A DNA stretch of 64,000 nucleotides from Rebecca billardiae RCC1528 (GCA_965240325.2 OZ251228.1:1240001-1304000); one strand, 5' to 3'; shown: positions 3,006 through 42,177, counted from the first letter of the stretch. Translations and numbers: made by a program. Notes: a model not told the origin generated them from the letters alone.

Positions 3006-4062
3006 GCGCCGTCGGAAGGTTCATTCAGCCACCCGCCTGCGAGGCCTGGATGAGGGCTGCGGCGCCGCCAGCGCCCGTCGTCCTCGCGGACCTCGCCCCA
3101 CTGTCCGTCCACAAAACGTCTGTCGTCCCGAAACTCTCCGGCTGATGGGCGCCGATGCGACAGCGCGCCGACAGGATGAGGATGTAGTATGGAATGTGGA
3201 GCCCCACTGTCGGTTGGTAAAGGCGTGTATCAAGACTAAGTAACGGAATTGGCCTGGCCCTCAGGAGTCAGGTTTTATTTTAGTTATCAATATGCCCTAT
3301 GACTATGAGTAATGGGCCCCGGAGTGACGTGTGGCGTGTCGGCCTCAAAGCCGGCGCAACAGTTCCCCGCCCGCGCAACAGGGTTTGGTTGCCAGGAGGG
3401 TCTGCTGGCTCACCAGCTGCGGGGGCCGGGGCGTCCGGCTGTTTGCGCTTACGGAATCATACGGGCTGGCGGGGTCCGGCACTGGTGCCGCCAACCTCGA
3501 ACGGTCGCGGCCAACCGCTGCCGCTCAAGTGCCGTGGCCTGCATCGGTATGGCTGCTGCGCCGGGGGTCGGCCCCTGCGGGCTGCGCTCCCAGGCAGGCC
3601 CGGGTGTGCCCTGTAAGCCGGGTGCGCGCGAAGCGTCGTTATGCTGGCGAGGAACTGCAGCTGTGCCTGCTCTACGCATGCGGCGCTGGCACAGCCTGGT
3701 CAGCAGACTTGCGCAGGGTGAGCGGGGGGGGGGGGGGGGGGGTATCAGAATCCAGGCGGCCCAGTTTGTAATGGCGAACGACATAAGGAGAAAGCCCTCG
3801 AAAGCGATGTTTCAATATGGTGCTTACCGGCGGGTAAAAATGAATATGGATGCATTCGAGGTTTGGTCAATTTTAGAATGGCGTCTGATTGTTCGCGCGC
3901 GCTCCGTGAGTAATTTATTGTGGAATATACCGCTCGTATCAGACGAACCTCATTACCTCGGGCACGAAGCGAAGTGTGATGCGCGGTTGATGAGCCTCTT
4001 CCCGCGTCGGACCTGCCACGAAGGCCGCGCGAAACTTCCAGCCCCGAAACGCCGAGTCGCCG

Positions 4063-5280
4063 ATGCCGCTGCACTACTTGCTCCACACGCACGAGACCCT
4101 CCGGCTCGTCCTCGACGTCCTCGATGAGGACGACGTCCTCTGCGCAGCTCTCTGCTGCTCTGCCATGCGCGACGCGGCACTCGCTCGCTTCCCGCACGGC
4201 ATCCGCACTCGTGCCGACGCCGCGTGCGTGTCGGCTGCACGCGTCGCTTGGGCCATGAGCCTGGGTGCTGCTCATGCGCCCTTGGGCGAGGTCGTTTGCG
4301 TCGCGGCGGCACGTCTGAACCGGCCATCCGCCATCCGCACGCTTCTGCAGATCGGCATCACTCCCGACGACAAAGTGCTGTGCGCGGCGGCGCGACATGG
4401 CGCGCTCTTCTGTGTCGAGTGGCTGATGCACCACTGCAAGCTCGTTCCGGGGCCCCGCGCGGTGACGGCTGCTGCCGAGGGTGGGCATGCACGTGTCCTC
4501 AACCGCTTCCTCGCCATCCGTCGCGTCGAGTGGGACGCCGAGGCGTACGTCGCGGCAGCACGCAGCGGCAGCGTTGAGTGCCTCCGCCTCCTCGTCGAGG
4601 CGGATGATGACATTTCCCTCGGGGAGATGGACGATGCTCTCCAACCTCATCCGGCGCCGTTGCGCAGTGCGCTCTCCGACGGCGCATTGCCGGCGGGCTA
4701 TCGCGCGACGAGCGACGCCGCAGCCGAGCAGGAGGACACGGCGTGCATCCTGCATGCGGCCACCAACGTCGAGCACGACAGACAGTGCGCAAGTCTCCTT
4801 CCGATCTTGGTGACCCGGCTCTGGCCGTTCCGCCAAGCGCGTGAGCGCCGCGGGCTCACGGCCAGGCCGAGTGCGCTGACGGCGGCAACAGACGATTCCA
4901 GTCTCGGAGTGTCATCACAACCGCCGACACCGGCACAGCCAACCTCCGAGCCGCGGACCGCGCCGCTCGAGCGCCGTCGGTATGGGTCGAGATTTGCTTC
5001 GAGCGTGCAGCGGCGCTGGGACGAGCGCGCGTGCGAGGCGGCCGCCCGCGCTGGGCACATCGATGCCCTGCATTTGCTGGTCGTTGGTGGTGCACCATGC
5101 ACGTGGTTGGCTGTGCAAGGAGCGGCGCGACGCAGAGACGTCATGATGGTCAACTGGCTCGCGCAGCACGGCTGTGAGTGGCGGTCGCACGGAGCCCAGA
5201 TTGCTGACGCAGCAGATGGCGACGCTGACATCACAGGTTGGATGCAGCGGCATGGCTGGCAGCCGGCCGGCTCGTCATGA
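4063..5280 (+). CDS. Divergent ankyrin-repeat protein with F-box-like N-terminus
   Basis: 405-aa ATG ORF. Repeats LCAAARHGALFCVEWL, AAAEGGHARVL, WDAEAYVAAARSGSVECLRLL, WDERACEAAARAGHIDALHLL...GCEW; N-terminal LRLVLDVLDEDDVLCAALCCSAMR is F-box-like. Confidence 0.7.
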   Translation: MPLHYLLHTHETLRLVLDVLDEDDVLCAALCCSAMRDAALARFPHGIRTRADAACVSAARVAWAMSLGAAHAPLGEVVCVAAARLNRPSAIRTLLQIGITPDDKVLCAAARHGALFCVEWLMHHCKLVPGPRAVTAAAEGGHARVLNRFLAIRRVEWDAEAYVAAARSGSVECLRLLVEADDDISLGEMDDALQPHPAPLRSALSDGALPAGYRATSDAAAEQEDTACILHAATNVEHDRQCASLLPILVTRLWPFRQARERRGLTARPSALTAATDDSSLGVSSQPPTPAQPTSEPRTAPLERRRYGSRFASSVQRRWDERACEAAARAGHIDALHLLVVGGAPCTWLAVQGAARRRDVMMVNWLAQHGCEWRSHGAQIADAADGDADITGWMQRHGWQPAGSS

Positions 5281-5576
5281 AGGCTTCTGGCCGAAGCCTC
5301 CGATGAGCCTCATCCAATGAGCCGCCCCAGCAGCGTGGTCAGTGTCGTCGTCGCGCAGCAGCTTCATAGATATATTAGATGATAGATCGATCATCTATGA
5401 CTATGATGACGATACTCCGCGCCCATAAGTTCGTCATATATATCAGAGCAGTCGTCACGACGACTGTAGCAGACAGACTAGCAGGCTGTAGGCACGGATC
5501 TATCCGACTATCGCACATAGCAGCAGTACACGGAGGCGACTTGCTCCTAAGGCTGCAGGTCCGACTGGTGGTCCCA

Positions 5577-8500
5577 TCATGCCTGCGGCTGCAGCCAACG
5601 CGCCGGCTGGCGCGGGGCCATCCGCGCGACGGGTGTCAGTGTCGTCACTGTGAGCGACGACGACGCCGTCGAGGTCGCAGATTCCCGCTCGCGTGCGCGG
5701 GCCGACGCGCGGAGCGGGCCGCCGGCGGACGATACGCGGCCGCGAGCCAGGCTGGCGTGGAGCGGGCCGCCCGCAGACGACACTCGACCGCGAGTCAGGC
5801 TGCGGCAGCCCGCTCCGTGTAGCGGCGACGGCGCGCCGATCGAGTCGTGCGCCGGCCACCGTGTATTCGACGGGCCTTGGCGCATCCGCCCCCGGCCCGG
5901 CGATGGCGTGGCACACGCACCGTGGGCCATCCAGTGGCGGCCGTTGACCCGGCGGGTCGGCGATCCCGCCGGAGAGAGGCGGTGGGCCAAGTGGCTCACG
6001 CCGCCTATCGGGTGGCCGTAGATGTCGAGCTCGTGGCTCGCTGCCCTCGAGGACGGAGCCGTGCGGATCCCGGCGCCGTGCAACGAGTAGATCTCGCCGG
6101 AGTGCACGTGCGATCGCACCGCAGACCAGCGCGCCGACGGCGGGTGCGAGCCCCGCACAGGCGACCAGCTACTCGATGGCGAGCCGCCGCCACTCGTCGC
6201 GCGCTTGTAAAACACGTCAGCCGACGACCACGCGCCGGAGTGGGTGTGGTTCGTGCTCGTGCTCTCGCGCTGCGCCTGCCGCACCGGAGCAACGTGCGCT
6301 GCATGCAGCGCAGCCGCCACCGACAAGGTGATCCGCGGGGCGGGCTCAGGGATGGTTTGCGGCGCGACCTTGGCAAGCTTTCCCCGAGACGCCGCCGCCG
6401 ACCAGTCCGAGATCATCCTCGGCCGCGCCAACACGTCCGAAGTCATCCTCGCCCGCACCGGCCGCTCGGGCGCGTCGCCCGCGGCGCGCCCGGTGGCCTC
6501 GCCAACCGCCCGGCCAGCGACGAAGTCGATCGCGTCGGTCATCGCCCGGCGGCGGCGGCGGCCACCGAGGTCCGGCCGGTGCGCGAAGCTGCTTGGCGAT
6601 TCGCTGCGAATCGCAGACAGGCCCTCGGCGGACAGGCTGGCGGAGGAGCGGGCCGAGCCGACGCCGTCGCGGGCGGACTCGGGCGCGGTGGCGGCGGGCA
6701 AGCCCGCGGTCAGAGCGAGCGAGCAGCGGCCATCCCGCGTCCCATCCCCCGTCTCGGAGGCCGAGATCGCGCTCGCCCGGCGGGAGCTGACCTCTCTGAT
6801 GAGGCTGAGCTCGAGCGGCGGGCTCGGCTCCTCCGCGCTCGAGACAGGCTCAGACGTGTCGCGCCGCGAGCGCGCGGAGGCGGGCTCGCCGCCGTGCACG
6901 GTCGCCAGCCGGAGGCGGCGGTTTGCTGAGGGTGTCCTGTCCTCCCACAGGAAGCTGGCGATGGCGCTGCGCAGCATCGCGCGCACGGACGTGTTGAACG
7001 CCTCCATCGCCTCGCTCCCGTCGCCGCACCCCGCCTCGCCCGCCGCGCCGACCGGCGCGAAGTGCGCGCGGATCAGCGCGTTGATCATCTGCTTGTCCGC
7101 CTCGACGGTCGCGTCGGCGGTGCGCGCGTCAAAGGCGGAGAGCGCGCTCTGCACGCGCGCCAGGTCGGTGCGCACAGCGTGCTGCAGCGCCTTGCGCTCG
7201 TCGGGCGCGATGCTGAGGTCGAAGCGCACGCCCTGCAGCCAGCACTGCACCACCTCGTACAGGCACCACACGCGCGTGAGGCACACCGGCTCGTCCCACG
7301 GGTCTGCGCGCGGCCGCAGCCGCGGCCACAGCGGGGCGCGGCGCGCGACCGGGACAGTACAGTCGCGCGCGCGGATGGGTAGGTGGGTGGTGCTATTGGA
7401 GTCAGCACGGCGCCGCGCGCGTCGCGCCGCGCCGCGCGCTCGTTCGTGCGTGCGGCGCGCGCGACGAGACACACCAAGCACCATCACGACCCGGCCGACG
7501 GAGCGCTCGATCGCGCCAATCTGCGCCACCTCCGCCTCCACCTCGTGCTGCCGGATGCCTGCAGTGCAGCGCGCGCCGGCGGGGCGCGGCGTATGCGCGG
7601 GGCGCGACGTGATGGGTCAGGTGGACGGCGAGAACTCCGCGCTCGAGCGCACACGGCGCGACCGCGCGCGGGGCCAAGTGCGCACAGAAGATATCGAGCC
7701 ACAGGTACGTGCCCTGCGCCTCGAGCTTGTGCATCCGGAGGTACGCCACCACGGCCGAGAGCATCTTTGCAAACGAGCAGCACTGCGCGTGCGAGATGAA
7801 CTGCGGCGGCAGGCGGCGGCACGCGCGGCGGCGCGAGCCAGCCGCGTCGGACACTCCGCTCGGGCGGGTGCTGACCGGGGCCAGGCAGCGTGGAGGGCGC
7901 GCGCGCGCGCGCTCACCAGGTTGGCGTTGGCGACGGCTGGCCTGCCGTCCGCCGTCTGCGCGTTGGCGCACAGCTCGGCGATGGACCATCCCGCCGTGCG
8001 CGCCGTGAGCGCGCGCACGGACTCTGCCACCTCGAGCGTCGTCGCCTCCTCCGCAATCTCGCGCGCCGAGATGAACTCGTCAATCATCGCCACGCTCACG
8101 CCGAGCAGCAGGTGCGGCGGCACGGGCCCAGTCTCGAGGAGGGCGTCCCTGTCCCTGACCACGGTGGGCGGGGTCGGCCGGTGGCTGTTCTTGCGCGGCT
8201 TGCTGAAGGGGGACTCCTCATCGACCACCAGAGTGGAGATCTTGAGGCTCGCCCACACGTCGGCGATCGCGAGCAGCGCGCGGCGCAGCGGGCCGCACAG
8301 CACGCGCACGCCGATCGGCCGGAGCAGCGCGCACTGCGCGTGGCTCACCGCGAGCGCGGCGCCCAGGTGGATGGCGAGGAGGACGTACCGCGGCCACGGG
8401 AGGTAGTGCGCGAACGTCAGCCCGGGCACGCCGGTGACGAGCGCCAGCACGCGCATGGCGACGATGTGCCGAATCGTGCCCGTGAGGCGCGCTGCGAGTG

Positions 8501-9647
8501 GGCCGGGCAGCGCGCTCGCCCTGGCGAGCGCGCGCGTGCGCACCCACCAGCGCACACACGGCACGAGCATGCACGCGTCGAGGAGGAGGAAGCTCACGCG
8601 CAGCGCGGAGATGAGCATGCCCGACGCGAAGATTGCGCAGCCGATCGTGAAGAGCACCGCGCCGCCGAGAGCTGCGCGCGCGAGCCACAGCGAGCCGGCC
8701 TCCGCGGCTGAGAGCGGGTAGCAGCTGCCGCCGCGCCTGGGCTCGCCATCCTCGGGCACGACCGAGAGGCGCAGCGAGGCGAGGCCCTGCGACACGCTCA
8801 GCCGCGAGACGTACTGGAGGAACAGCCCGGCGGCGATCAGCGCGGGCCACAGCGCGCACGCGTGCAGCGCGTACGCCGCCTCCGCCGGCAGCCGGCCGCG
8901 CGACAGCTCGGGGTCGAGGCAGAGCAGCGCGGCGCGCGCGGCGTTCGCGACGAGCTCGAGGAGCAGCATCAGCGTAGGGATCGAGCCGAGGCACATGCAG
9001 CGTTCGGCGCGGACGAACGACTCCAGGCGGAGCGCCGCGAGCTCGATCACCACCAACGCGCCGAGCGCGAGCGCGGCCTGCCACATCGCCCACGCGGCTG
9101 AGCCGTGCAAACGCGCCCACGCGGACGGCGCGGGCGGAGCGGCCGTGAGGTGCGCTCGTACGCGCTCGCCGCGTCGCAGCGCGCGAACGAGCATCTGAAC
9201 ATTCGCCTGCTGAATGTCGACCACGGGCAGGAGGCCGACTGCTGCCGTGGCGGCTCCGCCCGCCAGGCGCCGCATCTGCGCCTCATGGCCCGGGACAACC
9301 CAAAGACGATCAAGCCACGGACGGTGCACGAGGAGGGCTGACGCACCGGCGCGCGCAGCCTCGGCCGCGTGCTCCTCGAGGGAGCATCGAGAGGCCTCGG
9401 GCGATTCAATCACCACGAGCGCCCCAGACATCGCGCCCGGCTCGGCCTCGAAGCGCGGCGGGCAGCTCGCGCGCGAGACCACGAGCGGCCCCGACACGTC
9501 GAACGCTTGGCGCGCGAATGCAAAGGGCTCGGCGAGCAGCGAGAGGTTGGCAAAGGGGGGCGGCGCGTCCGTCAACACGAGACCACTCCGTACCGGACGC
9601 GCCGTACCGAGCGCATGTGCGACGAGCACGAGCGCGTAGTGCGGCAT
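5577..9647 (-). CDS. Putative receptor: signal peptide + PA domain + 7 TM helices + cytoplasmic TIR/HET-like domain + disordered tail (4 exons: 9647-7917, 7800-7686, 7558-7475, 7303-5577)
   Basis: Three GT-AG introns join the ORFs in frame, giving ANL|FISHAQ...YLWLDIF|CIRQHE...VVMVL|DPWDEPVCLTRVWCLYE. PA-like segment GALVVI...RCSLEEHAAEAARAGASALLV...LPVVDI; seven hydrophobic stretches between ~9100 and ~8320. Confidence 0.75.
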
Positions 9648-10079
9648 GGGGTCGCACGGATTGGTTTATCGGTCTAATAAACCGTGGGTAACCCAACTGG
9701 CGAACCGCGCGATGAATAGTTTTAAATCATAGAATTAGTAAAGTCCGCTCAGAATGCAATCTCTTGCGCTCAGATGATTGAACCCCCTTGTGACAACAGA
9801 CACTCACTCCGTGGCTGAAACGAGGATTCGATAGTAGTATCTCAACTAGATGGCCTGGGTTCGCCCTTTCATTGATATACCTTTGCTATTGTAGCTATTA
9901 TCATACATGATACAAGTACTGGCGCACACAAACCCGAGCGCGCTTGTCGTCAGCGCTCCCGGACCCCGCGCATCCGGACCACGTCTTCTATTCACGGCTC
10001 CGCGCAAGCCGCGAATTCGTTCACAACGACTTGTCCAGCCGCCGAGGACCCAACCCGGTGCGCCTCCGCGCAGCGAAGC

Positions 10080-11450
10080 ATGTCCGCATCGTACGAGCGC
10101 AAGGCATGCGGCTCGTGCCGCAAGGTGATCTGGAGGCCCCTGGGCGAGCCAGCCGCCGATGCGGTCCTCGTCTGTGGCCTGTGCAAGCAGTCCGGCGGGC
10201 AAGTCAACGGCGAGTGCCTCGTGTGCCGTGAGTCGGGCGTCGTGCTCGAGCCCAAGTCTGTGCGCGATGGCGAATGCCTGGGCCATCGCTTCTGCCATGC
10301 GTGCTGGCAGACGCACATCGAGACGAAAGTGCGTGAGCGCAGCGCGGTCATCCCATGCATGCACCCCGGCTGTGTCAACAAGCTCGAGCCGCGGGACGTG
10401 AAGCGCTTCCGCTCCGACCTGTACAAGCAATTCCTGCAGGTGCGCAGGGCACCGAGCGCGCGTACCGTGCAGGTGCTGGTGCCCACGCCCGCTGGGAGTG
10501 GCGGCCGCTGGCGCACGCGCATCGCCTGCAAGCGGCCCATGCGACGCGCACTCTGCGCGTGCTCACCGCTGCCCACCGCTCGCCGCCCGCGCGACCATTC
10601 GGACGGACGCATTGGGCGGGCATGCAGAACAAGTACCGAGACTACGAGACCCGGCTCCAGGCCATCTTCCTCGAGGGCGACGATCCGTTCGCCCAGTGGG
10701 CTCGCAGTCACACGCAGAGCTGCCCGCAGTGCCACGTCCTCGTCGAGCGCTCCGAAGGGTGCGGCGCGCGCACGCCTTTGCCCGAGCGGTGCACGCGCAT
10801 GCGCTGCGCGTACGGCTGACGCTGTGTGCCCCGCTGCGCGCCCGGCACGGCACAGGTGCAATCACATGCGGTGCCAGTGCGGCTTCGAGTTCTGCTACCG
10901 CTGCGGCCGGCCGACCTCCGACGACTGCAACTGCCCGTACGCGCAGAACGGCCCCGAGCTGATCTCCGGTCGGCCGGACGAGCTGCGCCGCCTGCAGGCC
11001 GTCGCCGAGCAGCGGACGCGCGGCGCGCGCACGCTGCAGGCGGCCTTCTTGGCGTCGGCCCGCGGGCAGGCGGCCTCCTGCCGCCGCGCGGCAGCCTCGA
11101 AGATCGTCGGGGCCGTGCGCCGCGCGTTCAAGCTGTCCTCGCCGGGCTTGGCCGCACCCGTGCCGCACCCAGCCGACGGCGGCGGCGCGGCCGACGCGGC
11201 ACCGGCCGCGCCGCCGCCCGAGCAGGAGCAGCAGCAGCACCCAGCCACAGAGGCTCTGCCTGTTCTGCACGAGTCGGGCGAGGGTTCGTCGGACGAGAGA
11301 AGCGAGCCGGACGAGGGGAGCTACCGGCCTGAGCTCGTGCTCATTCCGCAGCGCCAGCACTCGCTGGTGGGCATGGCACCCCCGTCCCAGCCGGCCCGGG
11401 TGGAGGCAGGGGCTGCGCGCGTCGCGCGTCGCGCGCGCCGCTCGATCTGA
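10080..11450 (+). CDS. RBR-related E3 ubiquitin ligase (RING1 + RING2/Rcat), 3 exons
   Basis: RING1 CLVC...CLGHRFCHACW...IPCMHPGC. Introns after FLQ (10440-10627) and within SEG join to SCPQCHVLVERSEG|CNHMRCQCGFEFCYRCG, the Rcat motif with catalytic Cys. Confidence 0.8.
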   Translation: MSASYERKACGSCRKVIWRPLGEPAADAVLVCGLCKQSGGQVNGECLVCRESGVVLEPKSVRDGECLGHRFCHACWQTHIETKVRERSAVIPCMHPGCVNKLEPRDVKRFRSDLYKQFLQVRRAPSARTVQVLVPTPAGSGGRWRTRIACKRPMRRALCACSPLPTARRPRDHSDGRIGRACRTSTETTRPGSRPSSSRATIRSPSGLAVTRRAARSATSSSSAPKGAARARLCPSGARACAARTADAVCPAARPARHRCNHMRCQCGFEFCYRCGRPTSDDCNCPYAQNGPELISGRPDELRRLQAVAEQRTRGARTLQAAFLASARGQAASCRRAAASKIVGAVRRAFKLSSPGLAAPVPHPADGGGAADAAPAAPPPEQEQQQHPATEALPVLHESGEGSSDERSEPDEGSYRPELVLIPQRQHSLVGMAPPSQPARVEAGAARVARRARRSI

Positions 11451-17112: not shown

Positions 17113-20100
17113 ATGTCAGCGGCGGAGCAGGTCGTGCGAGCCCGGCCTCGACGGCGGCAGGGCGGCGCGGCGGAGGAGGCCGTCGACCCTGCCGAGGCGT
17201 CGACCTTGCTGGTGCGTCGCGCGCGCCGCCGCGAGACCGTCCACGCGCGCGCGTCACGCTGAGCGCGAGCGCGCGGTTGCGTGCGCGCGCGACGGCGCGC
17301 GCGCGTTACGCAGGGCGGCGATGACGAGGGCATCCAGACGGCGCCGGCGCGGGGTGGGCGTGCGGCACGCCGGCTCGCGACGAGCGCGTCGCCCACGCGC
17401 GCGCCCGAGCAGGAGGACGAGCGCGCGCTCACCGCGCCCTCCCGCCAGCAGCAGGAGGCGGACGCGAGCACGGCTCCGGCCGGTGGGCGCGCCGCTCGGC
17501 GTCGCCGGCAGCTTCCGGGCGACGGCGCTGCGGGCGAGGCGGAGGACGCGGCTGCGTCGAGCGACGCGCTGATCCAGCCGGCCGCCGACGACGCCGCCCG
17601 CTCCACCTCGGCGCGCCGACGCCGGCAGCGCCCGCGCGCCCCGCCCGGAGCGACGGACACGCCGGCGGCCGAGGCGCCGGCCGCGGACCCTGAGGGTGAG
17701 GATGGCGCCTCGACGCGGCGGCGGGGCTTCTTCGCGCGCGGGAAGAGCCCTGCGCGGCCCGCGACGGCGGACAGCGCGCCGACCGGCGGCAGAGCCGGCG
17801 CTGGCCTCATGCAGCGCATCCGCGCGGGCTCGTCACGGCTGCGGCGCGCCGAGGGCGCGCCCGCCGCCGCGGCGGCCGAGGAGGGCGGCGCGGAGGGCGG
17901 CGCGGAGGGCGGCGCGCCTGCACCGGACGAGGGCGCGCCTGCCGCCGCGGCGGCGCCCGCCGCGGAGCACGTCGAGACGCGGCGCGAGTGGCTGCTGGAC
18001 TCGGTGGTGCGCGGCGTGGTCACGCAGACCGACATGGACAAGCAGCTCGCCATCGAAGAGCGGCTGTACACCGACCGGCGGCGGCTGCTGGATGAGGCTC
18101 GAACACGCGAGGGGCGGCGCGCAGACGAGCGCGCGATGCTTGTCGCCGGCTCGGCGGGCGCTGTGGACGAGGGGTTCTTCGTGGAGCACCCGCCGCCGAT
18201 GACGGACCTGCAGATCACGCTGCTGCTCGCGCGGCTCTCCGCCGTGCGCGACGCCGACGCCGACGCCGACGGCGCCGACGGCGCCGATGTGCCCGACGCC
18301 GACTCAGACGAGGCGCGGCGCCGCGCGCGCGCCGCGTCGCGCGGCGGGTCCGACGCCGTGCCGCCGCTGCAGCCCGACCCGCTGCGGCCGGGCGCGGGCG
18401 TGCCGTACTTTGTGCACACGGACGGGCACGCGGACGACGCGGCTAACCTCTCGCGCGTGCACGTGCCGCGCCTCGTGCGCACGGCGCCCGGCACGGCGAG
18501 CGGCGGCGGTGCGGGCGGCGGCGGCGGCGGCGCGGGCGGCGGCGCGGGCGGCGCCGGCGGGCGACAATTCGACGCCGCGCTTGCTGGGGTGACGGCCGAG
18601 TGGCGCGGGCCGCTGGAGATGAGCGTGAGCGTGCTCGGCGGGATCGTGCTCGACCACCCGCTCTTCTCGCCCGAGCTGCTCGCCGCGCAGCGCCTCACCG
18701 CCGCGTACACCACGTGGCAGCAGCACGCGGCGCGGCGCGACGCCGCTAAGCTAGGCTCGCGCATCGACGGGCTTCGCGCCGAGTGCGCCGAGGCGCGGCG
18801 GCGGCTGGACGGCGGGGAGCAGGGCGGCGGCGGCGCGGAGGGCGTGGGCCAGAGCGCGCCGGCGCTCTCGCAGCTGCACGCGCTGTACGCCGAGCTGCTC
18901 CAGGCGCTCGCGAGCCGCGACGAGGCCGAGTACGAGGCGCGCGTCCTCGCGCGCCGCGCGCTCGCGTGCTGGCGCGCCTTGCGCGACGCGCGGCGCGCGG
19001 CCGGCTTCACCACGACGTCCGTCACGCTGCGCGTGCGCGCGATCGAGCACGGCGACGAGGGCGCGGCGCGGGAGGAGGCGCTGCGCGCAGAGGTCGAGGC
19101 GATGCGCACCGCGCACGAGCTCCGCGCCCGGCTGCGCGCGCTGCAGCGGCAGGGCGAGCGCTCAGAGACCCCCCGCACGGGCGCAAGCGGCGCAAGCGGC
19201 GGCGGCTCGCGGCGCGGCAGCGGCGGCGGCGGCGGCGGCGGCGCCGACGCGCGCGCCGACGCGCCCTTCGACGAGGCGGCGGCGACGCGCGCGACGCGCG
19301 AGCGGCAGTCGTTCTGCCTGCGCCCGCGCGACGAGCCCGCGCTCTCCCTCCGCCTCGGCGTCGACGAGGCGCAGCTCACGCCCGCCGAGCAGCTGCCTCG
19401 GGAGGAGCGAAGGCGGCAGCGGCAGCTGGGAGGGCTCGCGCTCGGCGGCGTGCTGCGCGTGAACGGTCACGTGGCGGGGCACCTGCCGCCGCGGCCGCTC
19501 TCGCCGACGGACGGGCGGGTGTACTGGGGCGAGGCGCTCGCGGTCGAGCTGTGGGCCATGCCCTCCTCCGTCGTGCTCGAGCTCTTCGAGCGGCGCGTCC
19601 TCTCGCCCGCCACGCCGTCCGTCGGTGCGATCCCGCTGGCCGTGCCGACGTCTGAGGCGGCCCTCGGCTCGAGCTACTCGAGCGGCGCGCACGCGTACTC
19701 GTTCGCGGCGGCGCGCTCGTTCACGCGGCCGGCGGGCGCGGTGCCGCCCGCGCCCGCGCCGCCGAGCCCGAGCGCGACGGGGCGGCGCGGCAGCCTCGGC
19801 GCCTCCGCCGCCGCCGCCGGCGCCGGCGGCGCGGACGGCGGCGCGGCCGCGCGCCCGGCGCTTGTCGCCGCCGGCGCGGAGGTGGGCGCAACGTGCGGCA
19901 CTGTTGACATCTCGGTCGTGTGGGCGTCGACGCACGAGCCGTGGGGCGGCGCGCGCGGCGCGGCGGCCGCGGCGGCGGCGGCGGCGGCGCGCGCCCACGC
20001 CCCGCACGCCCACGCCCACGCCGCCTCCGCGTCGGGCGCGCGCGTGCGCGCCGGAGGCGTGAGCGCGGGCGGCCTGCTGAACCCGAGCCACGTGCACGGC

Positions 20101-23100
20101 TGGCTCGCGTCTGCAGCACTCGACCCGAACGACCCGCGCGACACGCCGCTGCTGCGGCTGCTGCGCGCGGCGGAGTCGAAGCTGAGCGCGTCGCGCGCGT
20201 TCCGCGTGTGCAAGCTCGAGCAGGACGGCCACTGGGCCCGCGCCGACGCGCTGCCCTCGACCCGCGTCGCGCTGCTCAAGCTGCGCGCGGCGCGGCCCGG
20301 ACTTGTAGCGGAGCCCATCCCAGCGCGCGACAGCGCGATTCGCGAGGAGCTCGCGGCGCTGGTGGCGCCGTCGGGCGCGGAGGACGAGCGCGCGGACGGC
20401 GGCGGCGGGTGGGACGAGCCCGCCGACCGCGAGGCCGAGTGGGCCGCGCTCACCTCCGGCCGGCGGAAGGTCGCCGCCTTCCTCGCGCGCGTCGCGCGCG
20501 CGCGCGCCGCGCGCGAGGATTTGAAGGGCGTCGCGCCGCGCACGGTGAGTGACGTGGTTCAAGAGCCGCAGGACGATCTGGCGGCTGTGGCGTGCGAGTG
20601 CAACTGCGCGCCGCTGCTCGAGCTGCTGCGCCCGCGGCGCAAGCTGCGCCCGCGCCGCCGCCCGCGAGCGCCGGACTACGACGCGGCCGAGCGGACGCTG
20701 CTGATCGGCGTGAAGCGCGCGCACGGACTGCCCGCGCGCACGCGAGCGTACGGCGGCGGCGCGGAGGAAGCGCTTTCGCCCTTTGTGCAGTTCGCGCTGG
20801 CGGACGCGTCGGTGCGCACGACGACCAAGTCGGGCCCCGCGCCGCAGTGGAACGAGACGCTGAGCCTGCCGCTCCCGCGCTCCGTGCGCATCGGCCAGGT
20901 CGACGCGCGCGAGTTCGCCGCCACCTCCACCATGCTCTACTGCTCGGTCTTCGACGAGGCCGTTTCCGCGAAAGCGCTCGGCGGCGCCGACGCGGGCGCG
21001 CTCGGCGCGAGCGGGCTTCTCTCGGGCGGCGCGGGGCCGGCGTCGCGCACCACGCTCGGCGCCTCCGCCGCCTCGCTGCGCGGCGCGCCCTCGCGCGGCG
21101 GCGCGGCCACGCCAGACCCGAGCGGCGTGCCGCGGCCGCCCTCGTCCGCGGGCGGGCTTTCGACCTCGCGGCGGCGCGGCGGCGAGGACGCGGCCGCGGC
21201 CGAGGCGGAGGAGATGGCGGCGGACGCGGCGGTGCGGCGCTCGCAGCTGCTCCGCACGGGCGGCACCGGCGTCGGCGGCGCGCAGCTGCACACGCGGCGG
21301 CACTACCTCGGCACGCTCGCCATCCCGCTCGCCACCATCCTCCGCGAGGCGCGCGTCGAGGGCACGTTTGAACTGCGCGTGCCGCCGATGCTGATTGCGC
21401 ATGCGCTCGCGGGCGACGCGGAGGGCGAGGGCGCGCGCGAGCCGCGCGCGCCGCGGCGCACGGCGACGCACGCGCAGGGCGGCGGCGGCGGCGGCGGCGG
21501 CGGCGCGTCGGCCGCGACGCCCTTCGGCGGCGGCGCGGCGCAGGCGGTGCCCGCGCGCCGCGCCGCGGGCGTCCCCGCCGCCGGCCGCGCCGCCCTGTCT
21601 CTGTTCGTTACCGTCGAGCCCCCGCTGCCGCCGCCGCCGCGACCGGAGCTCGAGCTGCCGGCCAACTCCGAGGAGGGCGCGCTGGTCGGCCTCGCGCGCC
21701 GCTTCGGCGAGAGCGTGCGCGCGCTCGGCGCGTTCTCGCGCGCGCGCCGCCCGCTGCAGCTCTTCGCGACCAACTCCGAAGGCGAGCCGACATTCGTCTG
21801 CCGGTGCGCGCGGCGCGGCCGGCGCGGCGCGCGCCGGTGCGCCGGAGCGCGCGGCCGTGCCGCCGCGCGGTGCGCCAGGCGCCCCAAGCGCGCGGCGCCT
21901 CGGCGTGACGCGCCGCGCGCGCCGTCTCGCGCGCTCTCTCACGCGCGCACGCGCGCGCGCACCGCATGCCGCACGCCGCCGCGCCGCGCGTGGCCCCCGC
22001 CGCAGCTACGTGCGCGCGCAGCTGCCGCCCTCCGAGCTGCGGACCAAGCCGGAGCTGCTGCGGTTTGTGCGGCTGATTCCGTTTCTGGAGGACCTGGCCA
22101 CAAACGTCGAGGCGAAGCAGGACGTGTGGACGACCACCGCCGAGTTCCTCGCGATCGGCGCCGGTGCGCGCGGCCGCCGCCGCTGGTGGCGGTGCCGCCC
22201 CCGCGCGCGAGGTGCGAGGCCTCGGCTCAGCTCACGCGCGCGCGCCGCGCCGCCCCCTGCTGCGCGCGCCCGCCCCGCCCGCCTCGCCTGGGCCGCGGCC
22301 GTTGCTGCGGCTGCGCTCGGCTGCGCTCGTGCGTCCCTCCGCAGGTGACTGGGAGGAGCATGCGATCCTGCTGTGCAACTACCTGCTGCAGCGGGGCGAG
22401 GACACGTACGTGGTGCTCGGGCGCACGGCGCTCGACGGCGTCGCGACGTACGTCCTCTCGCGCGAGGGCGGGCGCTCTGAGGGCATGCTCTACGACGCGA
22501 CCACCGGCACCGCCTACTCGACGACCGACGTGCACTGCCCGCTCGGCGCTGTCGGGATGGTATTCAACGGGAGCAACGTGTGGGCGAACGTGCAGCTCGC
22601 CGACACGCCCTCGCAGATGTCGTGGGCGCTCGGCGACCCCGTCGCGTGGAAGCGCCTCTTCACCGAGACCAACTGCACGCCGGAGCAGATCGAGCGATGG
22701 ACAGCGACTGTGCAGGTGCGTGCGCGCGCGCGCGGCGCGACGCGCGGCGTGGCGCGACACACGCGCCGCTGCGCGCGCGCCGAGGTGGCGTGCGCGAGTG
22801 CGGCGCGGCGTGCGGCGCTCCGTGGGCCGGCGGCGAGCGCGTCGGCGGCTCCACGCGCGCCGCCCCCTCGCCCTCTCCTCCCGCCACCCCTCGCCGCCCT
22901 CCGCCTCCGCCGCGCGGCGCAGGTCGACCGCCCCGTGTACACTCGCACGCCCGACGAGGACCGCAACGACCTGGAGTTCGAGGTGGAGCGCGCGCTGCGC
23001 GCGCACATCGAGGACCGGAGGTGGGCGCGCGCGCGGCAGGCGGCGGCGCCGGCACGCGCGTCCGCGCCCACCGCGCCGCACGTGTGGGCTCCGCCGCTCA

Positions 23101-39042: not shown

Positions 39043-41910
39043 CTAGCACAACGATGGGTCGCACAGCGGCTTGTCGAGCACGCCGCCAAACAAGAGCTGC
39101 CGCGCGCTCGCGTGCCTCGACGAGTGCTGCGCGGTTCGCGGTGCGTCCGCACCCCCCAACCGCCGCGTGCTGCGCGTGTCCGGGCAGATGCAATCGAGCG
39201 GCCCGGTCGCGACGCTCTCGATGAGCCTGCGCAGCTTGAAGAGCGAGCCCTTGATCATGGGCTGTGCTGACGCCGCCACCACCGACTCCACCGCCAGCCC
39301 CTCAAAGAGCGCGGGCGGCTCGCCCTCCTCGTACCCGAACATGCGCTTGGTGAACTTCCTCAGCCCGAGGTTGGCGAAGTCGTCGAGGATTTGGAAGAAG
39401 CGCTTGGGCGTGATGTTGTCGCGCAGCACCGCCTTGGCGGCGTCGATCGACTCCTCGTCGGTCGCGGTGCCCGCAATCTGCGCGGACGCGGCGGCGGTGA
39501 CAGAGGGCGGAATGTAGGTGACAATGTCGAACGCGACCGAGCCGTCGGCCGGCCGGACATTCTCGATGGTCACGTACTCCGGGTCGATGTGCAGGTACGC
39601 GGCGATGTTCTCCTTGATGCCCGTGCGCATCTGCACCGTGAACTCCTGCACCGTGCCCAGGCTGATGGTGACAGTGACGACATAGCAAGTGCCGCCGGGC
39701 GGCGATGGCGGCGCCGGCGAGGGTGGCGGCGGCGGAGACGGCGGCGGCGATGGCGGCGGCGGCGAGGGTGGCGGCGAGGGTGGCGGCGAGGGTGGCGGCG
39801 ATGGCGGCGGCGAGGGCGGCGGCGATGGCGGCGGCGATGGCGGTGGCGATGGCGGTGGCGATGGCGGTGGCGGCGATGGCGGCGGTGATGGAGGCGGCGA
39901 TGGCGGTGGCGACGGCGGTGGGCTGGGCGGCGGCGAAGGTGGCGGCGATGGCGGCGGCGATGGAGGCGGACTTGGCGGAGGCGACGGCGGCGGCGATGGC
40001 GGTGGGGAGGGCGGGGGACTGGGTGGCGGCGGCGATGGCGGCGGCGATGGTGGCGGCGATGGCGGCGGCGACGGCGGCGGCGACGGCGGCGGCGACGGCG
40101 GCGGCGACGGCGGCGGCGACGGCGGCGGCGACGGCGGCGGCGACGGCGGCGGCGACGGCGGCGGCGACGGTGGTGGGGACGGCGGCGGCGACGGCGGTGG
40201 GGATGGTGGCGGCGACGGCGGCGGCGTCGGCGGTGGCGATGGCGGCGGGCTGGGCGGCGGCGAAGGTGGCGGCGAAGGTGGTGGCGAAGGTGGTGGGCTT
40301 GGCGGCGGCGATGGCGGCGGCGATGGCGGCGGCGATGGCGGCGGCGATGGCGGCGGACTGGGTGGCGGCGGCGATGGCGGCGGCGATGGCGGCGGCGATG
40401 GCGGCGGCGATGGCGGCGGCGACGGCGGCGGCGTCGGCGGCGGCGATGGCGGCGGCGATGGCGGCGGCGATGGCGGCGGCGTCGGCGGCGGCGATGGCGG
40501 CGGCGATGGCGGCGGCGTCGGCGGCGGCGATGGCGGCGGCGATGGCGGCGGCGATGGCGGCGGCGATGGCGGCGTCGGCGGCGGCGATGGGGGCGGCGAT
40601 GGGGGCGGCGGCGATGGCGGAGGCGAAGGCGGCGGCGAAGGCGGCGGCGAAGGCGGCGGCGAAGGCGGCGGCGAAGGCGGCGGCGGCGATGGCGGCGGCG
40701 ATGGCGGCGGCGACGGCGGCGGCGATGGCGGCGGCGACGGCGGCGGCGACGGCGGCGGCGACGGCGGCGGCGACGGCGGCGGCGACGGCGGGGGCGACGG
40801 CGGCGGCGACGGCGGGGGCGTCGGCGGCGGCGATGGCGGCGGCGAAGGCGGCGGCGGCGATGGCGGCGGCGACGGTGGCGGCGATGGCGGCGGCGACGGC
40901 GGCGGCGACGGCGGCGGCGACGGCGGCGGCGACGGCGGCGGCGACGGCGGCGGCGACGGCGGCGGCGACGGCGGCGGCGACGGAGGCGGCGGCGAAGGCG
41001 GCGGCGAAGGCGGCGGCGAAGGCGGCAGCGAAGGCGGCGGCGAAGGCGGGGGTGAGGGCGGCGGCGGCGAAGGCGGCGGCGAAGGCGGGGGTGAGGGCGG
41101 CGGCGTGGGCGCCTGCAGCCGACGGCCTCGGCGCGGGGCACTCTCCACCTCAGCCAGCGCGGCCGCGTCCTGCTCAGCAGCCGCGTCAGCGAGCCGGCGG
41201 CTTTCGCTCGCCTCGCCACCGCCACTCGAGACTGCTGCGCGCGTGAAGAGCGTCTCGGGGAGGAGCGGGACGTCGCGGTTGGACATGACCCAGTTCTCCA
41301 CGTCCGCGATCTCCATGAGCAGCGCCTCCTTCGTCTCGCCGTTCACGATGCCGGCGTAATAGCCCCTGTCGTTGGCTGTGAGGCAAACTGCCGTCATGCC
41401 GTGCTTCAGGCCCTCCGGCAGGAAGCTGCCGCCGCTCGTCTCGAAGGTGCCGATGAGGCTCACGGCGAAGAGGAACTGGGTGACGACGTCGTTTCCTTGG
41501 TACACGAACAGGCCCGTGAGCCCCTTCAGCCCGTCCTCCTCCACCTCGGGGATGCCGCCAAAGAGCAGCTCGCGCGGCGCAGCCGACGAGCCGGCGCTGC
41601 TGCGCGTGAGCTTCGGCGCTTGGCCGAAGGGCTCGCCGACGGTGGTGAGCATCTGTGATGTGGCGTCGAGGCAGATCACCTCCCCCGCGCCGATGTCGTC
41701 CTCCGCCGTGTACGTCGCCGTCCACGAGATGTAACCGAGCCCGGCGACGCTGATCTCTGTCCCGGCCTCGAGGTTCACGAGGACCCACATGCACACCTGA
41801 TCGGGGTTCGATTCGGCGTTGAAGCCGATGATCGCCACATCGCCAGGGCTGAGTACGGACGCGCCGGCGAGCGCCAGCCCGCACAGCAGCACCGCGAGCG
41901 CGCGCAGCAT
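39043..41910 (-). CDS. Secreted extensin/pherophorin-like (SPPP)n protein with a bacterial-type N-terminal domain and Cys-flanked C-terminal module
   Basis: Signal peptide MLRALAVLLCGLALAGA; ~470-aa SPPP array; C-terminal globular region; single ORF (ATG at 41910). Confidence 0.85.
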   Translation of the reverse strand: MLRALAVLLCGLALAGASVLSPGDVAIIGFNAESNPDQVCMWVLVNLEAGTEISVAGLGYISWTATYTAEDDIGAGEVICLDATSQMLTTVGEPFGQAPKLTRSSAGSSAAPRELLFGGIPEVEEDGLKGLTGLFVYQGNDVVTQFLFAVSLIGTFETSGGSFLPEGLKHGMTAVCLTANDRGYYAGIVNGETKEALLMEIADVENWVMSNRDVPLLPETLFTRAAVSSGGGEASESRRLADAAAEQDAAALAEVESAPRRGRRLQAPTPPPSPPPSPPPSPPPPSPPPSPPPSLPPSPPPSPPPSPPPPSPPPSPPPSPPPSPPPSPPPSPPPSPPPSPPPSPPPSPPPSPPPPSPPPSPPPTPPPSPPPSPPPSPPPSPPPSPPPSPPPSPPPSPPPSPPPSPPPSPPPPSPPPSPPPSPPPSPPPSPPPSPPPPSPPPSPPPTPPSPPPSPPPSPPPSPPPTPPPSPPPSPPPTPPPSPPPSPPPSPPPTPPPSPPPSPPPSPPPSPPPSPPPPSPPPSPPPSPPPSPPPSPPPSPPPSPPPSPPPSPPPSPPPSPPPTPPPSPPPSPPPSPPPSPPPSPPPSPPPSPPPSPPPSPPPSPPPSPPPSPPPSPPPSPPPSPPPSPPPPSPPPSPPPSPPPSPPPSPPPSPPPSPPPSPPPSPPPSPPPSPPPSPPPSPPPPSPPPSPPPSPPPSPPPSPPPSPPPSPPPSPPPSPPPPSPPPSPPPPPSPAPPSPPGGTCYVVTVTISLGTVQEFTVQMRTGIKENIAAYLHIDPEYVTIENVRPADGSVAFDIVTYIPPSVTAAASAQIAGTATDEESIDAAKAVLRDNITPKRFFQILDDFANLGLRKFTKRMFGYEEGEPPALFEGLAVESVVAASAQPMIKGSLFKLRRLIESVATGPLDCICPDTRSTRRLGGADAPRTAQHSSRHASARQLLFGGVLDKPLCDPSLC
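39690..41110 (-). repeat. Coding 12-bp tandem array (TCGCCGCCGCCG; Ser-Pro-Pro-Pro)
   Basis: Direct inspection. Confidence 0.95.
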
Positions 41911-42177
41911 CACCCGCTGCCAACCCCCAGGGAGCGAGGGCTTTCAGTTGCGGCGGAGCTGCTCGACCACCGAGCCCGTCTCTCTGAAACGCGACAAGGG
42001 GGAGAGTAACGTGCGCACTCCGGACTGTCCGGATGGGAGTTGCCGCAGCCCGATGGGCCAATCACCGAGCGAAGCGACGACTCCACGCCAGAAGTAACGA
42101 CAACTCCGAAAAACGGTTCAAACGCCTGCTCATTTTTTATGATACGCCCCTTTTGATTTCTCTTGACCGCGCAGAAA

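Follow-up and report, generated by a model that had tools for sequence, protein, structure and literature searches.

Whether a receptor-type membrane protein and an effector domain of the kind used in immunity and cell death can be encoded as one polypeptide is the question raised by a locus of the pavlovophyte haptophyte Rebecca billardiae RCC1528, located at positions 5577-9647 (minus strand) of a 64,000-nt stretch of its DNA (GCA_965240325.2 OZ251228.1:1240001-1304000, called the window below). An earlier note on this DNA had proposed that three GT-AG introns splice fragmented open reading frames (ORFs) into one protein, in which a signal peptide, a PA-like ectodomain and seven transmembrane (7TM) helices are followed by a TIR/HET-type domain and a disordered tail. 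The introns were found exactly as described, and the joined exons give a 3657-nt coding sequence for 1218 amino acids that ends with its only stop codon (codon coordinates were re-checked; Table 1). Judged from the sequence and its homologues, the four-exon gene is intact and the fusion architecture is real.

Gene structure, family and membrane topology

In the alignment, the start methionine of exon 1 occupies the column of the homologues' N-terminal methionine, and all three junctions of the spliced protein run without gaps against homologues translated from uninterrupted ORFs. The junction at intron 2, DIFC/IRQ, agrees with WLDVMCIRQ and similar sequences of the homologues, that at intron 3, VVMVL/DPW, is identical in P0013 and P0001, and the spliced cytosolic domain is 48% identical to that of P0013. 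Because the junctions are gap-free against single-ORF homologues, the 7TM part and the cytosolic domain can be assigned to one gene; the test for separate genes failed, since paralogues encode the PA, 7TM and C-terminal parts in single ORFs. The donor site GTGAGCGCG is common to the window gene and to the annotated intron of a Diacronema lutheri paralogue. The GC content at third codon positions (GC3) is 0.78-1.0 in frame along the coding sequence and exceeds that at second positions (GC2) everywhere but in the last ~120 codons; the gene region as a whole has 68-74% GC and its 5' and 3' flanks fall to 45-53%. A bare ORF is little evidence here, because high GC yields long chance ORFs in several frames; the two antisense ORFs lying over the gene, 6244-8406 (+, 720 aa) and 5847-6929 (+, 360 aa), are no more than chance predicts at 74% GC and give no evidence of genes. 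The Logan contig ERR14847148_2410 covers window positions 3421-7100 with 99.97% identity; it follows the genome collinearly and ends before the introns, and an exact-product look-up returned no record of the unspliced 676-aa ORF as a called product.

With exon 1 as the query, a full HMMER search of 1.84 billion representatives found at least 56 relatives (clusters), the best of them 33% identical, and the same C-terminal domain was present in 34 of the 56 as well as in the MMETSP protein P0001. The PA, 7TM and C-terminal parts are encoded in one uninterrupted ORF in P0013 (764 aa, on a transcript-sized JGI contig of 2333 nt), P0001 (an MMETSP transcript), P0003 (782 aa), P0016 (840 aa) and P0021, and P0039 is also among the single-ORF paralogues. 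P0003 and P0016 come from contigs of run ERR14847148, which also contains window DNA, and P0021 from its sister run ERR14847151; at least two paralogues thus share the sequencing run of the window, the own protein of which is not in the protein collections. Every member with a species name belongs to the Pavlovales: seven are from D. lutheri (KAG8458467.1, KAG8458474.1, KAG8460825.1, KAG8459293.1, KAG8458553.1, KAG8463106.1 and KAG8464532.1) and one is from Pavlovales sp. CCMP2436 (KAJ1628004.1), all annotated as hypothetical. No viral relatives were found in IMG/VR, and no second copy of the gene in the window. Mean pairwise identity within the family is 30% in the PA part, 27% in the 7TM part and 30% in the cytosolic domain.

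The ectodomain and the membrane part were modelled by AlphaFold2 (AF2) from amino acids 1-500 of the window protein and 26 homologues, with a predicted local distance difference test score (pLDDT) of 83.7 and a predicted template modelling score (pTM) of 0.83. By sequence, the Pfam PA profile (PF02225) matched the window protein with E 2.6e-4 and 21.5-21.7 bits, just below the cut-off of 23.9, and the paralogue P0043 exceeded that cut-off with 26.5 bits. By structure, the best Foldseek matches of the ectodomain in the PDB were the PA domains of ZNRF3, RNF43 and VSR1 and the PA inserts of aminopeptidases (E 7e-5 to 1e-3, probability 1.00, TM-score 0.55-0.69); the VSR1 matches include the cargo-peptide-bound structures 4tjx, 7f2i and 9l4p. 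Profile and predicted fold together identify the ectodomain as a PA domain, which had been anticipated for the region encoded at ~9500-9140.

Seven transmembrane (TM) helices and a helix 8 were predicted, the hydropathy profile agreeing with AF2, and E202, E231 and R238, located inside TM1 and TM2, are near-invariant. In Foldseek the bundle matched Frizzled-7 (8yy8_R, E 1.1e-3 over 328 columns) and Smoothened (4jkv_A, E 1.4e-3). The description of the protein as similar to G-protein-coupled receptors (GPCRs) therefore held for the fold, at E ~1e-3, but not for the sequence; as no GPCR family matches by sequence, 'GPCR-like' is a statement about the fold alone. The seven helices, the distribution of lysine and arginine (15 in the predicted cytosolic loops versus 3 in the others) and the conserved cysteines of the ectodomain support a topology with the N-terminus outside and the C-terminus inside, as had been predicted. 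Whether the N-terminus is cleaved or serves as an anchor, the PA domain would be outside and the C-terminal domain cytosolic. The ectodomain resembles the Frizzled regulators ZNRF3 and RNF43 while the bundle resembles Frizzled-7 and Smoothened, which is probably a coincidence.

Table 1. Parts of the gene and of its predicted protein, in window coordinates (a slash marks a splice junction in the protein; helix and strand numbers of the Glu660 row are those of the domain model).
Feature	Position	Strand	Amino acids	Remarks
Exon 1	7917..9647	-	1-577	Start codon, signal-like N-terminus, PA, 7TM, helix 8, linker, start of cytosolic domain
Intron 1	7801..7916	-		116 nt, GTGAGC...CCGCAG; junction ANANL/FISHAQ
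Exon 2	7686..7800	-	578-616	FISHAQ (beta-A) to YLWLDIFC (beta-B)
Intron 2	7559..7685	-		127 nt, GTGCGC...CTGCAG, phase 1; junction DIFC/IRQ
Exon 3	7475..7558	-	616-644	IRQHEV...GRVVMVL (alpha-B, beta-C)
Intron 3	7304..7474	-		171 nt, GTGTGT...GCGCAG, phase 1; junction VVMVL/DPW
Exon 4	5577..7303	-	644-1218	DPW...RVWCLYE, remainder of domain, long tail; stop 5579-5577
Signal-peptide-like hydrophobic N-terminus	9600..9647	-	1-16	MPHYALVLVAHALGTA; AF2 helix 2-12
PA-fold ectodomain	9138..9584	-	22-170	Beta-rich in AF2; conserved Cys62 and Cys88
Seven predicted TM helices	8325..9098	-	184-215, 223-244, 255-285, 314-339, 343-376, 382-412, 417-441	
Amphipathic helix 8 after TM7	8232..8291	-	453-472	Predicted by AF2; low-confidence linker to ~aa 505
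Cytosolic TIR/HET-like domain	6942..8126	-	508-764	Split by three introns; conserved over full length
Glu660 codon (RVWCLYE)	7254..7256	-	660	Candidate catalytic Glu; helix 150-161 after strand 133-137
Ala/Ser/Arg/Gly/Pro-rich tail	5580..6911	-	775-1218	Low complexity, no family match

The cytosolic domain

TIR is an immune and cell-death module common to bacteria, plants and animals, and HET is its fungal relative, through which heterokaryon-incompatibility proteins and HET-NLRs bring about cell death. The motifs quoted earlier in support of a domain of this type are all present as read. They form three blocks in the HET/TIR order, FISHAQ, YLWLDIFCIRQ and RVWCLYE, which in the model described below correspond to strand 72-75, strand 105-106 and helix 150-161, respectively; of the residues by which these blocks are defined, the domain keeps F-[IV]-S-H-A in beta-A, W-x-D in beta-B and R-x-W-C-L-Y-E in alpha-C. 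Among paralogues of ~30% identity the key residues are strongly conserved: W611 in 37/37, D613 in 33/36, R654 in 33/34, W656 in 29/32, C657 in 28/32 and H581 in 37/43. Glu660, the glutamate of the WCxxE motif, is kept in 24 of 26 relatives, the other two having Gln.

The fold of the domain was modelled on residues 478-733 of the homologue P0039, which are 43% identical to the window protein (pLDDT 93.2, pTM 0.91). An N-terminal helical piece (LLLGVS..) and an extra C-terminal helix flank a core running from beta-A to alpha-E, and the order of elements in the model, bA-aA-bB-aB-bC-aC-bD-aD-bE-aE, is that of TIR. The core starts with strand 72-75 (FVSH), helix 82-95, strand 105-106 (xW, then D) and a loop with helix 117-131, continues with strand 133-137 (VLVLD), helix 150-161 (RVWCLYEL) and strand 166-170, and ends with helices 173-194, a short strand and helix 207-221, followed by the extra helix 231-255. 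In a Foldseek search of the PDB the top 14 matches were all TIR domains (among them RPPT, RPP1, SNC1, RPV1, L6 and MAL), as were most of the first 30, and RUN1, RPS4, SARM1, ThsB, Hydra TRR-2, IL-18R-beta and TLR15 were found lower in the list. The best match had E 0.053, probability 0.75 and a TM-score of 0.27 by query and 0.39-0.45 by target. In BFVD a TIR/WD40 protein of Tetraselmis virus 1 came first (E 0.052, probability 0.93), followed by nucleoside 2-deoxyribosyltransferases and flavodoxins. The modelled homologue thus shows the TIR fold order, though with weak statistics.

Among sequence families, HET (PF06985) was the only one to recur, in 5 of 20 members, with a best E of 0.0025 and the matches centred on the WxDxxCIxQ block; the domain of P0001 scored 13.5 bits (E 0.095). 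A further label of this kind, the UniRef name 'Heterokaryon incompatibility domain-containing protein' carried by KAG8464532.1 (P0091), was not reproduced, as Pfam gave no HET match in that protein. According to the literature, HET is remotely homologous to TIR, with corresponding blocks at beta-A, beta-B and alpha-C that include the functional Glu (PMC4986451; PMC9153377), and HET homologues are present in Haptophyceae (PMC4986451). In the plant-TIR alpha-C motif, the Cys beside the catalytic Glu affects 2',3'-cyclic nucleotide monophosphate (2',3'-cNMP) synthetase activity (PMC9153377).

Compared with either family, the window domain shares some features and departs in others. Like fungal HET, it carries [FY]-x-S-[HY], W-[ILV]-D-x-x-C-I-x-Q and R-x-W-x-x-x-E in this order, but the spacing of the blocks in the window family is shorter and more TIR-like, and the HET scores lie under the gathering cut-off. 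It also has its own N-terminal helical part and additional C-terminal helices, and is placed C-terminal to a 7TM receptor, whereas fungal HET is found N-terminal to NACHT/NB-ARC or lectin domains. With the NAD+-cleaving TIR enzymes (RPP1, RUN1, L6, SNC1, SARM1 and ThsB) it shares the beta-alpha order and its best structural matches, and with plant TIRs an alpha-C motif, [S/R]-x-W-C-L-x-E, in which a Cys stands beside the Glu; the F-I-S-H of beta-A presumably resembles the beta-A of bacterial TIRs. Unlike these enzymes, it has no TIR profile match and is weak in Foldseek, and the W-x-D-x-x-C-I-R-Q following beta-B is typical of HET and not of TIR. The modelled domain thus contains the three blocks by which HET is defined (Dyrka 2014), but not the score. 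In our reading, it probably belongs to the TIR/HET structural superfamily as a compact form between the two named families, without demonstrably fitting the sequence definition of either. Accordingly, of the TIR/HET assignment made in the earlier note the fold order and the leading structural matches stood, whereas no TIR model matched, HET stayed sub-threshold and the structural matches reached an E of only ~0.05.

The domain was not encountered in any other context: a profile search of a 5.8-billion-protein set, covering the range of 141-448 aa, and a region search covering 420-1337 aa returned only family members, and TPR fusions, stand-alone partners and HET- or TIR-annotated proteins were all absent from the matches. 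The suggestion that this domain type in protists usually occurs with TPR arrays found no support for the present subtype, every detectable relative of which is a PA-7TM protein.

Proposed function and its alternatives

PA ectodomains act as peptide- or protein-binding modules in ZNRF3/RNF43 and in vacuolar sorting receptors. From the architecture, a mechanism may be proposed: an extracellular or lumenal ligand would bind to the PA ectodomain, alone or together with the 7TM bundle, and the receptors, clustered or rearranged as a result, would place their cytosolic TIR/HET-like domains next to one another. By self-association, which to our knowledge all characterised TIR enzymes require, the domains could form an active site centred on the conserved Glu, as known TIR enzymes do. 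Cleavage of NAD+ or a related nucleotide at this site would follow, and might either generate a small-molecule signal or deplete NAD+ and kill the cell; a part in defence or in the recognition of non-self seems the most plausible. Circumstantially, this is supported by Gephyrocapsa huxleyi, where virus infection induces, within 0.5 h, TIR genes whose N-terminal regions are extracellular or contain several TM helices (PMC12489294). Taken as a whole, the reading of the protein as a PA-7TM one-component receptor of the 'GPCR-bigram' type, with a TIR/HET-like output and the mechanism just outlined, seems to us plausible, the grounds for accepting and for doubting it being about evenly balanced. 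A NADase, immune or G-protein function of the family we only infer. More far-reaching is the idea that the family constitutes a new receptor class, in which a 7TM protein would have a direct NAD+- or nucleotide-processing TIR/HET output, would dispense with G proteins and adaptors, would turn the binding of a ligand at its PA ectodomain into an NAD-derived second messenger or an NAD+ collapse, and would be used by pavlovophytes against viruses or bacteria or in self/non-self recognition; this idea is tentative and we regard it as rather doubtful.

A number of results weigh against the receptor-enzyme reading. No TIR family of Pfam matched the P0001 domain or the 20 family members at E<=10 or E<=1, the exon pieces of the window gene gave no TIR match in Pfam either, PADLOC and NCBIfam yielded no TIR model, and two family profiles compared with the PDB sequences gave no TIR match; the Pfam HET matches, for their part, stay under the gathering cut-off of 22.5 bits. 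The fold was modelled on a homologue rather than on the window protein itself, and its Foldseek matches, with E 0.05-2 and TM-scores of 0.27-0.45, are weak. The equivalence of Glu660 with the catalytic Glu of TIR is inferred from its position in the secondary structure and from the resemblance to WCLxE. Even for HET proper, the biochemical activity and the mode of killing are not yet established (PMC10890737; PMC10197012). As regards the membrane part, none of the 27 members tested matched a 7TM family of Pfam, and the 7TM profile had no match among the PDB sequences. The ectodomain varies no more than the other parts of the protein and so shows no trace of diversifying ligand recognition. Finally, a scan of JGI metagenomes with a 27-mer of exon 2 returned no RNA support for the gene.

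Instead of being an enzyme, the TIR/HET-like domain might act as a homotypic adaptor or oligomerisation platform that recruits partners after ligand binding, in the manner of TLR/MyD88/MAL. Many TIRs signal without catalysis (PMC9153377), an adaptor role of HET was proposed by Dyrka et al. (PMC4986451), and the TIRs of MAL, IL-18R-beta and TLR15 are among the Foldseek matches. However, the Glu, the adjacent Cys and the SH of beta-A are kept across very divergent paralogues, which fits an active site better, and the searches returned no protein carrying this domain subtype alone or in another fusion that could act as a downstream partner. We think an adaptor function unlikely.

Two further explanations, each of which we hold to be quite improbable, retain the membrane protein but assign a different role to its C-terminal domain. 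The protein might be a conventional GPCR or 7TM regulator, the domain of which modulates heterotrimeric G-protein signalling or trafficking, similarly to plant 7TM-RGS1. The GPCR-type fold and helix 8 would be accounted for, as would the UniRef name 'RGS domain-containing protein' given to KAG8460825.1, but no GPCR family matches by sequence, Pfam detected no RGS in KAG8460825.1 or any other paralogue even at E 10, and the C-terminal domain, as conserved as the 7TM part, has a TIR-type fold and not that of RGS. Alternatively, the protein might be an endomembrane cargo or sorting receptor, its lumenal PA domain binding cargo as in VSR/RMR and its cytosolic domain and tail serving trafficking. 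The likeness of the PA domain to that of cargo-peptide-bound VSR1 and the long disordered tail, which could hold sorting motifs, are in line with this, yet VSR/RMR proteins are single-pass, and sorting would leave unexplained a 7TM bundle combined with a conserved domain of TIR type that has an active-site-like motif.

The C-terminal domain could also be a flavodoxin-like alpha/beta domain, for instance of the nucleoside 2-deoxyribosyltransferase or SLOG type, unrelated by descent to TIR/HET and with convergent motifs. The structural E-values, all of them above 0.01, the uniformly negative TIR sequence models and the presence of SIS-domain, flavodoxin, nucleoside 2-deoxyribosyltransferase and SLOG proteins among the weak matches speak for such a possibility. 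On the other hand, TIRs lead two independent structure libraries, the three motif blocks lie in order on the same secondary-structure elements as in HET/TIR, and HET is the sole Pfam family matched repeatedly, so that we consider convergence very improbable. An artefact, that is, a 7TM ORF and downstream ORFs belonging to separate genes or to a decayed pseudogene, is hardly credible: long ORFs arise easily at 70-74% GC, as the 720-aa chance ORF on the opposite strand illustrates, and the RNA searches were empty, but once spliced, the gene matches single-ORF paralogues without gaps at all three junctions, the conserved residues are all intact and the GC3 periodicity persists throughout.

Related systems, tail and neighbourhood

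The receptor-enzyme reading can be set beside several known systems. In the GPCR-bigrams of oomycetes and other protists, the published accessory list comprises PIPK, INPP, AC, PDE, TKL, DEP and aspartic protease (PMC6033456). Like the window protein, they are single polypeptides in which an N-terminal 7TM part is followed by a cytosolic, presumably catalytic C-terminal domain, and form a lineage-specific multigene family; the window protein differs in its TIR/HET-like accessory domain, which is not in that list, in its additional PA ectodomain, in matching no GPCR sequence family and in its occurrence in Pavlovales. ZNRF3/RNF43 (PA-TM-RING) and VSR1 have a PA fold N-terminal to the membrane, as does the window protein, but are single-pass with RING or EGF modules, whereas the window protein has seven helices and a TIR/HET-like output. 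Closer in taxonomy are the membrane TIR proteins that G. huxleyi induces at an early stage of EhV infection; they have an extracellular region or several TM helices and a cytosolic TIR with a conserved Glu, and were proposed to be receptor-like signal generators (PMC12489294). They share with the window protein the haptophyte origin and a TM or extracellular part N-terminal to a cytosolic domain with a conserved Glu; in contrast to it, they were found with TIR Pfam models, are described without PA or a 7TM/GPCR fold, and come from Prymnesiophyceae. The family searches detected no relationship between the two groups.

In the literature on GPCR-bigrams, haptophyte TIR/HET, 7TM-TIR and PA-7TM, no description of a PA-7TM or 7TM-TIR/HET protein was found. 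The earlier claim of an undescribed architecture is to this extent upheld, but needs to be qualified: the family is already public in the form of hypothetical proteins, and haptophyte TM-TIRs were reported in 2025 (PMC12489294). The parts (PA, a GPCR-type bundle and a TIR/HET effector) and the idea of 7TM-enzyme fusion are known; the combination is real and conserved, and its function as outlined above is putative. If the proposed function is correct, this would be the first 'GPCR-TIR' arrangement and a new type of output for GPCR-enzyme fusions, and a compact and tractable bridge between fungal HET and TIR would be available for HET biochemistry, with a bearing on danger sensing in protists. 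The family would also offer a simple test system, consisting of one polypeptide with a candidate catalytic Glu and of intron-free paralogues, in which ligand-gated TIR activation and algal immunity could be tested in Diacronema/Pavlova, which are of ecological and biotechnological use.

The tail predicted in the earlier note to be rich in Ser and Arg is present, with A 16%, S 15%, R 12%, G 9.5% and P 8.4%. It is specific to the lineage or the gene, because most homologues stop directly after the domain. GC3 supports its translation, although a further downstream intron may have gone unrecognised. Near the C-terminus, a tandem duplication of 48 nt (two copies, 85% match) at 5707-5802 (-) encodes units of the RGRVSSAGGPL[HR]AS type.

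Among the paralogues, KAG8458467.1 (JAGTXO010000051.1, 10001-13457) is annotated with a single intron, which follows ...RMWCL and lies elsewhere than those of the window gene. A copy of its last exon, 89.7% identical, is found 4.5 kb downstream (17966-18994), annotated as the separate 317-aa protein KAG8458474.1; the arrangement suggests a partial tandem duplication or a gene fragment. P0031 (KAG8460825.1) and P0040 contain an insert of ~290 aa (aa ~460-750) between the 7TM part and the TIR/HET-like domain; an RGS domain in P0031, suggested by its UniRef name, was rejected on the Pfam result given above.

The convergent downstream neighbour at 4063-5280 (+) encodes a 405-aa ankyrin-repeat protein (Pfam Ank_2, E 2.2e-8), the exact product of which is on the Logan contig ERR14847148_2410, so that the DNA read in this run was that of the source organism. 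The divergent upstream neighbour at 10080-11450 (+) is a Cys-rich ORF of 456 aa with no Pfam match at E<=0.01 and no exact product on record. The start-to-start spacer of ~430 bp between it and the gene includes the AT-richest stretch measured (9648-9900, 45% GC) and looks like a shared bidirectional promoter region. Elsewhere in the window, very high GC was recorded at 18001-22000 (0.80) and at 40001-42000 (0.78, GC skew +0.22).

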